From Heteronotia binoei (Eukaryota): a DNA stretch of 64,000 nucleotides. Where the stretch lies: positions 285,572,001 through 285,636,000 of the forward strand of contig NC_083223.1 of the NCBI RefSeq assembly GCF_032191835.1. The letters are read 5' to 3'. Positions 43,573 through 53,584 of the stretch are shown here, piece by piece. The translations under genes and the position numbers were made by a program. Position 1 is the first letter of the stretch; each line of letters opens with the position of its first letter. The notes below the pieces were generated by a model. It ran no database searches. It worked only from the letters and a program-made list of their open reading frames with translations, and was not told the origin of the DNA.

Positions 43573-43709
43573 ATGCAGGAGGCCCGGGAAGAGGCGGACG
43601 AGGAAGAGGAGGACGAGGTCTTCGCGGCCCCCGGCGGGGAAGGCGCCGCCGCCGCTTCCCGCCCCTGCAGCGTGGAGGAGCTCTACGTGCTGCTGGACAC
43701 GCTGGGCAG
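43573..43709 (+). CDS. DAPK2-like exon 1
   Basis: gagccATG; [17 protein letters not shown]...[13 protein letters not shown](S)|gtgag, phase 2. Confidence 0.85.
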
Positions 43710-46700
43710 GTGAGGCTCGCGGCGGCGGGGGGGGGGGGGGCTGGGGGGGGAGGGGGGCTGCCGCCTGCGCCCTCCCCCACGCGGCTCTCTCTCTCTCTCT
43801 CTCTCTCCCCCGCCGGCAGCGGGCACTTCGGGGTGGTGAAGCGGTGCCAGGAGCGCAGCACGCTCGCCTTCTACGCCGCCAAGTGCGTCAAGGTGCGCAA
43901 GCGCAGGGGCAGCCGCCTGGGCGTGGACCGCGAGCAGGTGGAGCGGGAGGTCTGCATCCTGCAGCGGCTGGAGCACCCCGCCATCATGCGCCTCCACGAC
44001 ACCTTCGCCAGCAAGACCGAGATGGTCCTCATCCTCGAGCTGTGAGTGGGCGGGGGTCGCTCAGCCACCCTGGCGCCAGGAGGCCCTGCTGCATTGGGGG
44101 GGGGAGGCCCCCCACCCTGGGGCCACAATGCTGTTTTCATTCCCTCCATTGGCCAAAGCAGCACAGGCCTGGCTCCTGAGGAGCTGGGGGTGGCACAGGC
44201 TAAGCCATGCAGCAGCAGGCCACCCGCCCACCAGTGAGGACCCTCCCTCCTGCACAGCATCCAGGGCGGGGAGCTCTTTGACTTCATTGCGGAGAAGGAG
44301 GTCCTGACGGAGGCCGAAGCCATCGAGTTCTTGCAGCAGATCCTCCAGGGGGTGAGCTACATGCACTCCTGCCACATTGCGCACTTCGACCTGAAGGTAC
44401 CTGCCCTGGCCACTGCAGGGGCGGCAGGGGGGGGGGGAGGCAAGGCCCCCACAGTGGGGGTGCTCGGGAGGCTGGCGTGAGGGCAGCGCAGGCCACCCGT
44501 TTGAGAGGCAGGGAACCAGCGTCCAGCAACCAGCACCCAGCAGGGTAGGCAGCTGGTGGGCGGCTGGAAAAACATATGGAGCAATGGTCCTAGAGGGAAG
44601 GGACGCTCTGTATCCTTGGTGCTTGCAGTGGTGGCAAGAGCGGGAGAGCTCCCGCTTTTCTGGTTCCATTGCAGGACTCTGTTTTGGCCCCTGTGTGACA
44701 CCAAGGGTTGGGCTGGATGCGCCATTGACCTGACCCACCATGGCTTCCCTGATGTCTGAGGGTGGCTGGAGGGCTCTGCTGGCCCAGGAGTGGAAGCCCT
44801 GAGAAGACACCCCCTCCCCGCCTCCCAGGAGGGGGCTCCCAAGGGCACAGCTCCTCCTTTCGTCCCCCCTCCCTCGCAGCAGCAGCTGCTTCTCTCGTGC
44901 TGGGCTGTGGTGCTCTGAGTGCCCCTCTGCCCATGGATCCTGGGAAGAGCAGAGCCCGCACATGTGGCTGCCGCCTGAGAGCCCCAGGTGGAGAGGGCAG
45001 CCCCCACAGCCCTTCTTTGGCTTGTCCTGGGACGGCACTTTTTCCTGGCTGCAGGGAGGCAAGTTTGGACCCGCATCTGTTGTTTTTGGTTCCAGCCTGG
45101 CAAGGACAAGTGTGTGTGTGTGTGTGTGTGTCTGTGGGTTGCTGTGCTACAGAAGGACAAACCTGCTGGGCTAAGTGGGACAGCCGTGGGGAGGGGCAGT
45201 CTGCCTGTGCATGCCAGTAGCCTGGGCCTGCCCCCATCTCCTGCACCGCATGTTGGTGAGCTGTCCAAGGAGGGGGCATCTGGAAACGGGGGGCTGGCTG
45301 ACCAGAGGGCTCTTTCAGCTGACCTGCCCGTGGGGCTGCTTTCTATCTTGGCTCAAGGAAGCAAAGCTGCCTTCCCAGTCGAGACGGTGTCCAGAACCCA
45401 CTTCTTCTGGGGCTCCGAGCAGCTGTGCCTCTCCTCCCCCCAAGGTGGCCAGGTCCCCACTGGGCTCGGCTGCTCAGCGCAGGCCCTGGCAGGAGGTGCT
45501 GCTGAGGCTGAGGCCCTGCCTCTTCTGGCCTGGTCCTTGGCGGTCAAGCAAAGGGATGCCAAGCAAACTCGAGCAGAGTCTGCCCCCCGGGGGGTGGCAG
45601 GGGGCGGGAGCTCTGAATCTTTGGCCCCAAACTGATCCTCGAGGGGTGCTGCGTTCGAGTGTTCTGTGAGCAGAGGAACAAGGCTGCAGTGAAAAAGAAG
45701 ATGTATTGAATAGCCCCCAGAGCTAGGCCCGGTCCCCCCAGCTCCCCTGTGGGGCAGGCATGTCAGGGGGACTTGGGGAGTGGGGGGCAGGGGCAGGGTG
45801 TATTTGCCTTCGCTGGGGACAGTTCAGGCCTTCCCGCTCTTCAAAATGCTTCTGAACTGGGCAGAAGTTTCCTTTTGGTGTCCGGTGGTTGAGGGCCTCT
45901 GTCTTTCTGGCAGCCGGAAAACGTCATGCTGCTTGAGAAGGCCATCCCCAGCCCCAGGATCAAGATCATCGACTTCGGCTTGGCCCAGCATCTGCGGGAA
46001 GGGGCCACCTTCAAGAGCCTGTGTGGGACCCCACAGTACGTGGGTAAGGGCCGAGCCAGCCACCCTCCCCTCCTGCACCCCCCCGACCCATAACTGGTGG
46101 AGGGGGTGCTGCAAGTCAGAGTGGTCCTCTGAGTTGCGGGGCGGGGGAGGGGATGGTATGCAGGAGATGAGTAAAGCAGTTGCTGCATGGTCTTTTCTGC
46201 ATTTGTTCCCAAAGAAGCTTCCAGAGGAAATGAGGAGAGCTTTGGGTAGTGTCTAGTCTTGGGATGGGTTAGGTCCCAGGGATCTGTCTGCCAGTGGCAG
46301 AACTCCACCCCCCACCCCCCTTTCAGCAGAAAAAATTCCCAGGATCCAGTGGAGGTGAGCAGAGAAGACCTCGGCTCCCCAGAATTTCATTTGGTCTTTG
46401 AGCTCCTGAAGAGGCTCCACGGAAGCAGCTCTTCTCCCTCTCCTGGAAATTTGGAATCTGTAGGGCAGGAAGGGGTTCCCCTCCCCCGCATTGAGAGGGC
46501 TTTCAGATTTAAACTTGGCTTCCTAATTTAACAACACAAAATGCCTCATTTAACGTTGTACCGTTTGGCATATTGATGGACTTCGGAAGCAGAAGTGTCC
46601 TCTTTTTCTGCAAGGAAACACTGAACATTTAATAATGTATTTACATTAAATATGTGAGAGCATAATTATATTATAGGTGTTTCCAAACTTTGTTTAAACA

Positions 46701-52700: not shown

Positions 52701-53584
52701 CTCTGTGTCGCACAGTGGCCAAAGAAACCAGGCGCCTTCAGGAGGTCCATCAGTGGGGCCAGGACACTCGAAGCCCTCCCACTGTGCCCCCTCCCAAGCA
52801 CCAAGAATACAGAGCATCCCTGCTCCAGACATAAGAACAAAAGAGAAGCCATGTTGGATCAGGCCAGTGGCCCATCCAGTCCAACACTCTCACACAGTGG
52901 CCAAAGAAACCAGGTGGTCCATCAGTGGGGCCAGGACACCAGAAGCCCTCATTCCCTGATGGGGGCGGGGCTAGGGGACCAGACCCTGCTGTCCTGGTGG
53001 AGGGTGTGATGTGGGGTACTGCTGGGGTTCTGTTGTGCGGCTTCCAACCCGGAAGGGCTTTCCTGGACAAAGGCAGAACCCAAACTCGGGTCTAGAAACA
53101 GACTGGCAGCCACAGGAGAGCAGGGTCCATCTGTTGGGACGTCTGCCTTGAAGAGAAGCCCCCCCGTGTGCATGGGCCGTGTGCGGCTCCCCCTCCTCCC
53201 GCCGCGCCAGAGTCGCCTCTCTCTTTTCTCCATTAGCTCTCCTACAACATGGTGTCCGCGTGCCACCGGCTGTGCCGCATGCAGCTCATGTGCCGCCAGA
53301 AGAAGGAGGACGAGAGCCTGGTGGGTGCTGCGGGGTGGGGGGCTTCCCCGGCACCTGCTGCCTGAGCCTGGGAACTGGAGGGGCTGCTGGGGACAGAACC
53401 CGGGGGCTGCTGCATGCCTCTCATTGCAGCTTCAATCCTGGGTGGGCCCTCGTCGGCCTCTTTCTCCTCCTGGCTCACCTGTGCCCTTTTCTGCCCCAAC
53501 CAGCGAGACTGCGAGAGCGACCAAGAAGACGACAGCCGGAGTCCGGCGGCTTTGCTGCGCAGGAGGAGAAGCAGCTGCTCTTGA
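43573..53584 (+). CDS. Death-associated protein kinase 2-like (DAPK family, Ca2+/CaM-regulated Ser/Thr kinase); exons 43573-43709, 43820-44041, 44258-44396, 45914-46043, 47386-47434, 48457-48483, 48903-49055, 49295-49340, 51821-51910, 53237-53320, 53504-53584; 385 aa
   Basis: LGSGHFG loop, YAAK, basic loop [25 protein letters not shown], CaM segment [21 protein letters not shown]2-type tail RDCESDQE...RRRRSSCS*. Exon sizes 222/139/130/49/27/153/46/90 match the DAPK layout as I recall it. 1158 nt in frame. Confidence 0.95.
43820..44041 (+). CDS. DAPK2-like exon 2 (222 nt)
   Basis: [44 protein letters not shown]...VLILE(L)|gtgagt. Confidence 0.95.
44258..44396 (+). CDS. DAPK2-like exon 3 (139 nt)
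   Basis: [46 protein letters not shown]|gtac. Confidence 0.96.
45914..46043 (+). CDS. DAPK2-like exon 4 (130 nt)
   Basis: [43 protein letters not shown]|gtaag. Confidence 0.96.
46785..46880 (+). mobile_element. Penelope-like 3' terminal fragment (same family as 4709-4953, no hammerhead)
   Basis: actttctccagtagaacacggcacttgagcccaaaagattctacaaactctaatgatgttaccagccgtgaaaacctgaaatctttg. Confidence 0.65.
47386..47434 (+). CDS. DAPK2-like exon 5 (49 nt)
   Basis: tttcctcag|(A)[15 protein letters not shown](W)|gtaag. Confidence 0.94.
48457..48483 (+). CDS. DAPK2-like exon 6 (27 nt)
   Basis: ctttcag|SIGVITYI(L)|gtaagt. Confidence 0.94.
48903..49055 (+). CDS. DAPK2-like exon 7 (153 nt)
   Basis: [50 protein letters not shown](G)|gtgag. 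Confidence 0.96.
49295..49340 (+). CDS. DAPK2-like exon 8 (46 nt)
   Basis: tttcag|[15 protein letters not shown]|gtgag. Confidence 0.95.
49840..50260 (+). mobile_element. Decayed internal CR1 ORF2 fragment (endonuclease C-terminus and linker)
   Basis: Manual translation gives [18 protein letters not shown] and FRKANFDK...LGRVPWE...WEFHK, with stops and frameshifts. Confidence 0.6.
50455..50537 (+). mobile_element. Old CR1 tail remnant; related remnants at ~4349-4396 (-), 12507-12554, 42420-42520 and 43222-43276
   Basis: ttcctgcattgtgcaggggttggactagatgaccctggaggtcccttcc...ctatga. Confidence 0.7.
50630..51765. repeat. GC-rich minisatellite, ~165-bp unit, ~7 copies, DAPK2-like intron 8
   Basis: ccggaggactcagctgaggctcgcaagtgc recurs at ~50807, 50972, 51137, 51302, 51465 and 51632. 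Confidence 0.9.
51821..51910 (+). CDS. DAPK2-like exon 9 (autoinhibitory/CaM-binding segment)
   Basis: ctgcag|[30 protein letters not shown]|gtaag. Confidence 0.94.
52279..52950 (-). repeat. Tandem array of the long CR1 3' UTR variant (~185-bp unit, ~3.5 copies) in DAPK2-like intron 9
   Basis: Units start near 52280, 52465, 52644 and 52830. Confidence 0.8.
53237..53320 (+). CDS. DAPK2-like exon 10
   Basis: cattag|[28 protein letters not shown]|gtggg. The Ser equivalent to DAPK1 S308 is retained (WKLS). Confidence 0.9.
53504..53584 (+). CDS. DAPK2-like exon 11 coding part
   Basis: aaccag|[26 protein letters not shown]; resembles human DAPK2 RNCESDTEEDIARRKALHPRRRSSTS. Confidence 0.9.
   Translation, partial: RDCESDQEDDSRSPAALLRRRRSSCS

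Follow-up and report, generated by a model that had tools for sequence, protein, structure and literature searches.

Three DAP kinases, plus the DRAKs, are counted in the searchable literature on death-associated protein kinases (DAPKs), because that literature has been built on human and mouse. Canonical DAPK2 (DRP-1) is encoded at 15q22 in human, and its tail has been reported to participate in dimerisation and 14-3-3 binding. DAPK1 extends into ankyrin repeats, a ROC-COR region and a death domain, and in DAPK3 (ZIPK) a leucine-zipper tail takes the place of the calmodulin segment. The present analysis concerns a further kinase gene of this family, here termed DAPK2L, found in a stretch of 64,000 nucleotides of the gecko Heteronotia binoei (contig NC_083223.1, positions 285,572,001 to 285,636,000 of the forward strand), which is referred to below as the window and supplies all gecko coordinates. 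The window belongs to chromosome record CM063325.1, a scaffold of 285.8 Mb whose end is approximately 0.2 Mb away, and contains two runs of N (3566-3707 and 36821-36968).

The evolutionary breadth of the family was surveyed by Shoval et al. (2011, PMC3050894), who recognised three DAPK clusters, read two teleost DRP-1 genes that clustered together as fish-specific duplicates, and counted five or more DAPk genes, in fragments, for the elephant shark. In the same study, DAPK2 loci were described as bearing a ZIPK-like alternative exon right after the kinase-domain exons, giving rise to DRP-1 beta. Compared with these systems, the gecko locus represents, with good confidence, a functional fourth DAPK lineage, namely a whole-gene duplicate of DAPK2 type that predates the split between cartilaginous and bony vertebrates and is most likely a product of the two early vertebrate genome duplications (1R/2R).

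Structure of the gecko gene

The kinase gene was rebuilt from the raw sequence by reading the three plus-strand frames between 43.4 and 53.7 kb and joining conserved DAPK-type blocks at canonical splice sites. It comprises 11 exons on the plus strand (43573-53584) with GT..AG boundaries at every intron, and its coding sequence (CDS) of 1158 nt, running from an ATG at 43573 to a stop codon that ends at 53584, specifies 385 amino acids (aa). The product, initially matched through a word search with exon 2 that retrieved a 385-aa protein at 100% identity, is identical over its full length to the NCBI automatic model "death-associated protein kinase 2-like [Heteronotia binoei]" (P0001). An earlier note on this DNA had described a complete 11-exon gene of 385 aa; its coordinates, exon count and length agree exactly with the reconstruction, both peptides that it quoted are present, and the NCBI name bears out its guess that automated annotations label such loci DAPK2-like. 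The features of the gene are as follows.

Exon 1, 43573..43709, plus strand: start codon, acidic N-terminal extension and beginning of the glycine loop (gene model; RNA contigs over 43571-43709).
Exon 2, 43820..44041, plus strand: GSGHFG loop, ATP lysine K67, modified DAPK basic loop and alpha-C glutamate E87.
Exon 3, 44258..44396, plus strand: beginning of the HFDLKPEN catalytic loop, with D164 (RNA junctions at both ends).
Exon 4, 45914..46043, plus strand: DFG motif with D186, and the clade-specific P+1 loop GTPQY (RNA junctions).
Exon 5, 47386..47434, plus strand: APE motif (gene model and RNA contigs).
Exon 6, 48457..48483, plus strand: micro-exon of 27 nt encoding SIGVITYIL (RNA junction 48483>48903).
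Exon 7, 48903..49055, plus strand: C-lobe (gene model and RNA contigs).
Exon 8, 49295..49340, plus strand: end of the kinase domain, HPWIK (contig overhang past 49340 corresponding to the start of exon 9).
Intron 8, 49341..51820, plus strand: site of the ZIPK-like alternative exon in canonical DAPK2; 165-bp tandem array at 50700-51753.
Exon 9, 51821..51910, plus strand: beginning of the autoregulatory/calmodulin-binding segment, with W330 (gene model, alignment, predicted helix 318-359).
Exon 10, 53237..53320, plus strand: S333, aligned to the regulatory autophosphorylation serine of DAPK1/2 (gene model, alignment).
Exon 11, 53504..53584, plus strand: acidic CESDQED patch, basic C-terminus RRRRSSCS and stop codon (gene model, alignment).

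All ten intron positions are common to the DAPK2L genes of this gecko, Gekko kuhli, eagle, platypus, Xenopus, gar and Chanos and to the canonical DAPK2 of crane, including the micro-exon 6, whose boundaries are the same in canonical DAPK2. Such sharing implies a DNA-level copy made with its introns rather than a retrocopy. A search by tblastn for the ZIPK-like exon gave no match in the window or at six other DAPK2L loci, the crane DAPK2 locus serving as positive control (E 5e-72), and because this alternative exon was not found, DAPK2L is predicted to make a product of the calmodulin type only. Longer annotated isoforms exist elsewhere (up to 576 aa); nine of the 11 that were checked differ only by an N-terminal extension, whereas in the remaining two the kinase domain is followed by additional residues.

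Repeats occur within introns of the gecko gene. The array in intron 8 consists of 6.4 copies of a 165-bp unit at 97% identity and is a source of long spurious open reading frames. Intron 9 contains 3.5 copies of a 186-bp unit (52281-52916), with similar units near 44700 and 53650 and elsewhere in the window; this unit looks to be of the short interspersed nuclear element type and gives rise to recurring reading frames across the window.

Phylogenetic placement and species distribution

A full-length search with the gecko protein returned 2563 matches at E <= 1e-30, of which the best 120 were taken, and every one of these 120 is of DAPK2L type. Within this set, identity to the gecko protein amounts to 77-87% in geckos, mostly 76-79% in other squamates, turtles and crocodilians, 68-78% in birds and amphibians, 70-71% in echidna and platypus, 69% in lungfish, and 66-68% in gar, sturgeon, bichir and teleosts. 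The DAPK2L of the chimaera Callorhinchus (58-59% identity), which also has a tail of DAPK2L type, was found through a search of all cluster representatives; that search was dominated by multi-kinase giants and further supplied the outgroups as well as the seeds for canonical DAPK2, DAPK3 and DAPK1. With the cluster look-ups that followed, it gave canonical DAPK2 of frog, parrot and mammals (58-59%), cat DAPK3 and a DAPK1 kinase-domain fragment, together with amphioxus, Ciona, octopus, nematode and arthropod DAPKs. A profile of the canonical DAPK2 kinase domain recovered canonical DAPK2 in white shark, gar, paddlefish, teleosts, coelacanth, amphibians, turtles, alligator, birds, ten squamates, platypus and placentals.

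A maximum-likelihood (ML) tree of 69 proteins was computed from 268 kinase-domain columns under the LG+C20+F+G4 model, with support given as ultrafast bootstrap and the Shimodaira-Hasegawa-like approximate likelihood-ratio test (SH-aLRT). DAPK2L sequences from chimaera, ray-finned fish, lungfish, amphibian, sauropsid and monotreme form a single clade at 100/100 on a stem of 0.39, and canonical DAPK2 forms another at 100/97, ranging from white shark to primates, with the gecko protein outside it. The two clades are sisters (90/74), both follow the species-tree order internally, and the H. binoei protein takes its place among the geckos. DAPK3 and then DAPK1-type sequences branch below the DAPK2/DAPK2L pair (95/82 and 97/86), vertebrate DAPKs are set apart from Ciona at 97/86, and Ciona, amphioxus and the other invertebrates all fall outside. 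Since each of the two clades has a chondrichthyan member and Ciona lies outside, the duplication can be dated before the divergence of cartilaginous and bony vertebrates and after that of tunicates. The tree thereby supports DAPK2L as a fourth vertebrate DAPK lineage, sister to DAPK2 and older than the cartilaginous/bony split.

This distribution is wider than had been assumed. The earlier note placed the gene in reptiles, and it is indeed found in turtles, crocodilians, birds and squamates, but that statement was too narrow, as chimaera, ray-finned fishes, lungfish, amphibians and monotremes retain it as well. Its description of the gene as absent from mammals was wrong as written, since platypus (P0101) and echidna (P0100) both carry it. 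No marsupial or placental protein occurs among the best 120 of the 2563 matches, and because no therian copy was seen, the gene was probably lost on the therian stem.

Genomic neighbourhood

In the gecko, the gene directly upstream of DAPK2L is PRCC, in agreement with the position beside PRCC given at first reading; it lies on the same strand, and its last coding exon ends approximately 4 kb before the start codon of the kinase. Two neighbouring genes were recognised in the window.

PRCC, 3' part, 33573..39580, plus strand: gene call with a Pfam PRCC match; tblastn matches to PRCC exons of platypus and eagle at 37770-39579.
Intermediate-filament gene, 5818-7257, minus strand: Pfam Filament, nestin-type, farther upstream.

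In platypus, PRCC is followed by an SH2-domain gene on the opposite strand, then by DAPK2L, and then by a receptor gene of INSRR type, whose product has Recep_L, Furin-like, fn3 and tyrosine-kinase domains. The order in the white-tailed eagle is the same, the downstream gene there encoding 1276 aa and having no Pfam family on record. Human 1q23 presents the order PRCC, SH2D2A, NTRK1/INSRR, so that the arrangement in platypus and eagle is the human one plus one extra gene. In gar, DAPK2L is followed by a gene of 1203 aa with C1, RhoGEF, PH and PH_16 domains (L003 24923-28364), of the ARHGEF2/18/28/AKAP13 type; if this neighbour is ARHGEF2, which is located at 1q22 in human, the synteny would reach ray-finned fishes. 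No informative neighbour lies within 10 kb of DAPK2L in Chanos, Xenopus laevis or Gekko kuhli, and no called neighbour within 10 kb of the canonical DAPK2 of crane, where HERC1 synteny had been sought.

Within the gecko window, SH2D2A-like and INSRR-like exons were searched for by tblastn with platypus and eagle fragments, and none passed 1e-4, the relaxed matches listed being low-complexity noise. The interval between PRCC and the kinase (39581-43572) is a GC-rich gap of 4 kb with no called gene and no SH2 exon by tblastn. Downstream, no protein-coding gene was called in the last 10 kb, which consists largely of tandem arrays (58808-60172, 60863-61179 and 61912-63560), including a 134-bp unit in 10.3 copies and a 78-bp unit in 21 copies at 97% identity. 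Several genes, from CRABP2 to HDGF, separate NES from PRCC in human; they are not evident between the filament gene and PRCC in the window.

Origin of the fourth lineage

The human region 1q22-23 is paralogous to 15q22-26, 19p13 and 5q14/9q21, as reflected in the families NTRK1/3/2, INSRR/IGF1R/INSR, BCAN/ACAN/NCAN/VCAN, HAPLN2/3/4/1 and MEF2D/A/B/C, and the other three blocks hold DAPK2, DAPK3 and DAPK1. One DAPK per paralogous block is what genome duplication predicts. A DAPK2-type gene would thus have been copied whole, introns included, before cartilaginous and bony vertebrates separated, most likely in one of the two early vertebrate genome duplications, and would since have been kept in a block with PRCC, an SH2D2A-like gene and, in platypus, the INSRR-type receptor gene. 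An origin by whole-genome duplication (WGD) is likely on these grounds. The earlier proposal that the gecko gene is the missing 1q23 copy holds in so far as DAPK2L is an old clade apart from DAPK2 that resides in the PRCC/SH2-gene block in platypus and eagle; its corollary of retention in reptiles is too narrow.

The most serious alternative is that DAPK2L is an ancient paralogue from the vertebrate stem that arose through single-gene or segmental duplication instead of WGD. The tree dates the event but cannot tell its mechanism, the synteny in fish does not decide the matter, and the neighbouring INSRR is possibly a local duplicate (Brunet et al. 2016, PMC4898815). However, the same study assigns the Trk and Insr families to 1R/2R, which speaks against an isolated duplication, as do the conservation of the full intron structure and the paralogy between the PRCC block and the blocks of DAPK1, DAPK2 and DAPK3, with one DAPK in each. 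A small-scale duplication is therefore regarded as rather unlikely, and WGD is retained as the preferred origin.

Several points weigh against the reconstruction of DAPK2L as a 1R/2R product lost in therians. The paralogy of the human blocks at 1q23, 9q21, 15q22-26 and 19p13 is drawn from human map positions and, for the Trk and Insr families, from PMC4898815, and the neighbours in gar and Chanos do not establish the synteny in ray-finned fishes. DAPK1 and DAPK3 are represented in the tree by one or two sequences each and lamprey and hagfish by none, so the order of the four lineages is provisional, as is any assignment of the duplication to 1R or 2R. Branch length, considerable on the DAPK2L stem (0.39) and very great in Callorhinchus (0.67), may have had some influence on the sister relation (90/74). 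Finally, the therian absence is drawn from the best 120 of 2563 matches and from general knowledge of the human and mouse kinomes.

Distinctness from DAPK2, expression and selection

It might be supposed that the gecko gene is simply the DAPK2 orthologue, moved beside PRCC and evolving rapidly. Its DAPK2-type tail and identical exon structure would fit such a view, as would the database name "DAPK2" of clade members such as those of gar, bichir, Astyanax and a Gallus entry, and the canonical DAPK2 of H. binoei was not retrieved. It was met neither in the DAPK2 profile search nor in the gecko cluster, which contains only Gekko japonicus, Sphaerodactylus and Eublepharis, a result that has no bearing on absence. 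The separation of the two clades at 100/100 and 100/97 stands against translocation, as does the occurrence of both genes in one species, which was observed in Sphaerodactylus, Eublepharis, Varanus, Hemicordylus, Elgaria, Gallus, Alligator, Mauremys, Xenopus laevis, Hyla, axolotl, platypus, gar, Chanos and Megalops; within Gekko, both are represented across two species (G. kuhli and G. japonicus). Furthermore, the gene occupies the same site beside PRCC in platypus and eagle, and the full-length identity of the gecko protein is 52-56% to canonical DAPK2 as against 84-85% to gecko DAPK2L proteins. A displaced DAPK2 orthologue is thus very improbable. The earlier note had named nesting within the DAPK2 clade and recent duplication as the outcomes that would overturn its proposal, and the ML tree rejects both.

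Evidence for transcription of DAPK2L comes from two public RNA-seq runs of one study, which gave contigs of 1409 and 1236 nt with exons 1-8 joined exactly as predicted. The contigs pass from the end of exon 1 (43709) straight to 43821-44041, include the junction 44041>44258, show 26 letters of the micro-exon (contig positions 806-831) between the exon 5 and exon 7 pieces, and both run on past 49340 into exon 9, covering its first 30 letters, a match far above chance. The comparison spanned 5951 letters of the window, and the contigs give no expression level. Relative to the window, they contain a handful of substitutions, synonymous and nonsynonymous, among them several amino-acid differences in exons 1-3, and an in-frame insertion after 43648 in the acidic N-terminal part of exon 1 (15 or 12 nt, depending on the run) with substitutions nearby. 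The RNA therefore derives from other individuals or lineages, and these differences suggest that, within the H. binoei complex, the N-terminal low-complexity region differs in length from one individual or lineage to another.

In intron 4, a separate feature was noted at 46634-47031, where the depth of RNA contigs reaches thousands in both runs, with many short contigs. This pile-up presumably reflects a highly expressed dispersed repeat outside the kinase transcript.

Selection was assessed on the CDS of seven orthologues rebuilt from their loci by a procedure that returned the gecko CDS save for one synonymous split codon. Heteronotia and Gekko kuhli give a ratio of nonsynonymous to synonymous substitution rates (dN/dS) of 0.155 (dN 0.075, dS 0.48), and deeper pairs remain below 0.36 wherever computable, these comparisons being saturated and several not computable. 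The gene is expressed and, most probably, functional and under selection. The opposite view, that of a decaying or non-functional copy intact in looks only, could appeal to the long stem branch, the change of motifs that are normally fixed, and the amino-acid differences between the RNA contigs and the window in exons 1-3. Against it are the open reading frame, catalytic residues kept throughout the clade, the low dN/dS, a correctly spliced transcript, and retention across the whole gnathostome tree, the depth of which is roughly 450 million years; there is very little probability left for such decay. The weakest alternative, a squamate- or sauropsid-specific duplicate of DAPK2, has nothing to recommend it except the first impression that the gene was kept in reptiles, and it is practically dismissed by orthologues at 66-75% identity in amphibians, monotremes, lungfish, gar, sturgeon, bichir and teleosts and at 58% in Callorhinchus, all in one clade with species-tree order.

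Protein architecture and predicted regulation

The DAPK2L protein of the gecko matches Pfam Pkinase over the entire profile (positions 1-263 of 263, E 1.6e-73). Its catalytic residues K67, E87, D164 and D186 and the APE motif are invariant or nearly so in 45 aligned proteins, and the finding of all catalytic motifs at first reading, with D164 in HFDLKPEN and D186 in DFG, is upheld. The DAPK family fingerprint is also present, as a basic loop between strand beta3 and helix C in the same place and of the same length as KKRQSRASRRGV; this loop is still strongly basic in DAPK2L, with RRG changed to RLG in most of the clade. After the kinase domain, the regulatory segment is collinear with that of DAPK2 and aligns to V(V/I)NLENFK.QYARRRWKLSFSIVSLCNHLT. 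Within it, RRKWKLS of the gecko protein (W330, S333) aligns to RRRWKLS of DAPK2, placing S333 on the inhibitory autophosphorylation serine and W330 on the Trp anchor. The tail, where an acidic CESDQED patch precedes a basic C-terminus comparable to RRRSSTS of DAPK2, is likewise collinear with the DAPK2 tail, and its initial characterisation as DAPK2-type is accordingly sound.

Structural comparison gives a similar picture. The closest solved structure is full-length mouse DAPK2 (E 6e-129, residues 33-385). An AlphaFold model built with 45 sequences has a mean predicted local distance difference test (pLDDT) score of 78; its kinase core is of high confidence, and residues 318-359 form a long helix, whereas its low-confidence parts are the N-terminus, the loop 202-215 and the last 27 residues. 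Superposed on DAPK2-calmodulin and DAPK1-calmodulin complexes (6paw, 2x0g) and on autoinhibited DAPK2, the model reaches target-normalised template modelling (TM) scores of 0.90-0.94. The most likely reading of DAPK2L is a Ser/Thr kinase with the build of DAPK2, controlled by Ca2+/calmodulin. The autoregulatory helix with W330 and S333 would occupy the active site, Ca2+/calmodulin would draw it off, and phosphorylation of S333 would oppose this release, while the short acidic-then-basic tail would mediate dimerisation and perhaps 14-3-3 binding.

The divergence from canonical DAPKs, which had been described as clear, is confirmed by the full-length identity of 52-56% to canonical DAPK2 and by seven clade-wide substitutions in the kinase domain, at positions otherwise conserved among DAPKs, five of which (H48, G50, Q207, Y208 and Q243) are present in Callorhinchus. 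In motif terms, the clade differs from DAPK1/2/3 by GSGHFG for GSGQFA, GTPQY for GTPEF, SPFQG for SPFLG, and RLG for RRG in the basic loop. In addition, the residue at position -2 from the C-terminus is Cys in most tetrapod DAPK2L proteins, as opposed to the phosphorylatable Thr of DAPK2. Since the changes in the glycine loop and the P+1 loop are fixed in the clade, nucleotide handling and substrate choice have probably been shifted. The PDB entries matched include DAPK1 glycine-loop mutants such as Q23V, and the first altered glycine-loop position of DAPK2L corresponds to one mutated in crystallographic work on DAPK1; a shift in catalytic properties is plausible for this reason. These clade-fixed changes constitute a natural experiment on DAPK catalysis and specificity.

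Annotation and significance

Full-text literature searches found no paper on the DAPK2L lineage, save for a passing gene name in a seahorse genome-wide association study, in keeping with the earlier remark that no functional study was known. Automatic annotation covers DAPK2L in over a hundred species, under names that disagree, and the gene has apparently remained undescribed as a fourth DAPK lineage. Plain "DAPK2" is the name given to members of the clade from chicken, cuckoo, Bombina, Pogona, bichir, gar, sturgeon, Astyanax and Callorhinchus (P0067, P0045, P0055, P0074, P0123, P0126, P0127, P0129 and P0136), and chicken and gar, at least, also have a canonical DAPK2. Orthology labels of "DAPK2" within the DAPK2L clade are unreliable, and such inconsistent automatic names can mislead orthology-based transfers. 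Moreover, where DAPK2 is inactivated in a non-mammalian model, DAPK2L may buffer the effect or confound the result.

In its boldest form, the proposal would describe a quartet with one DAPK per paralogon, selected in every major jawed-vertebrate lineage but therians, in which DAPK2L is a calmodulin-only kinase with distinct substrates or kinetics. This extended version is tentative and somewhat doubtful; if true, chicken, Xenopus and zebrafish-type models have an arm of DAPK signalling that work on mouse and human has overlooked. The survival of a fourth ohnolog outside therians is in itself a common and ordinary pattern, and its novelty is modest. The main use of the result lies in correcting DAPK family counts and orthology names and in providing a lead for functional work in non-mammalian models.

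Comparison with known DAP kinases and other ohnologs

Canonical DAPK2 is the closest relative of DAPK2L, being its sister clade and sharing with it ten identical intron positions, including the 27-nt micro-exon, as well as the kinase domain, a calmodulin-binding helix with Trp and Ser, an acidic CESD patch and a C-terminus of RRRSSxS type. DAPK2L differs from it in having HFG rather than QFA, PQY rather than PEF and RLG rather than RRG, in its location beside PRCC, in the lack of a ZIPK-like exon, in an identity of 52-56%, and in much faster evolution (stem 0.39). With DAPK1, the kinase core, basic loop and calmodulin-binding segment align, and the model fits 2x0g with a target-normalised TM score of 0.93 and a root-mean-square deviation (rmsd) of 1.8; in contrast to DAPK1, DAPK2L stops approximately 50 residues past the calmodulin segment. 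DAPK3 has a catalytic domain of the same family, but no homologue of its leucine-zipper tail was found by tblastn in or near the DAPK2L gene. Beyond the DAP kinases, DAPK2L resembles Kdr-like, Axl-like, Ddr2-like and Styk1-like, which are 1R/2R copies kept in some vertebrate lineages and lost in others (PMC4898815). Unlike DAPK2L, these "-like" ohnologs are receptor tyrosine kinases that already have a place in the literature.

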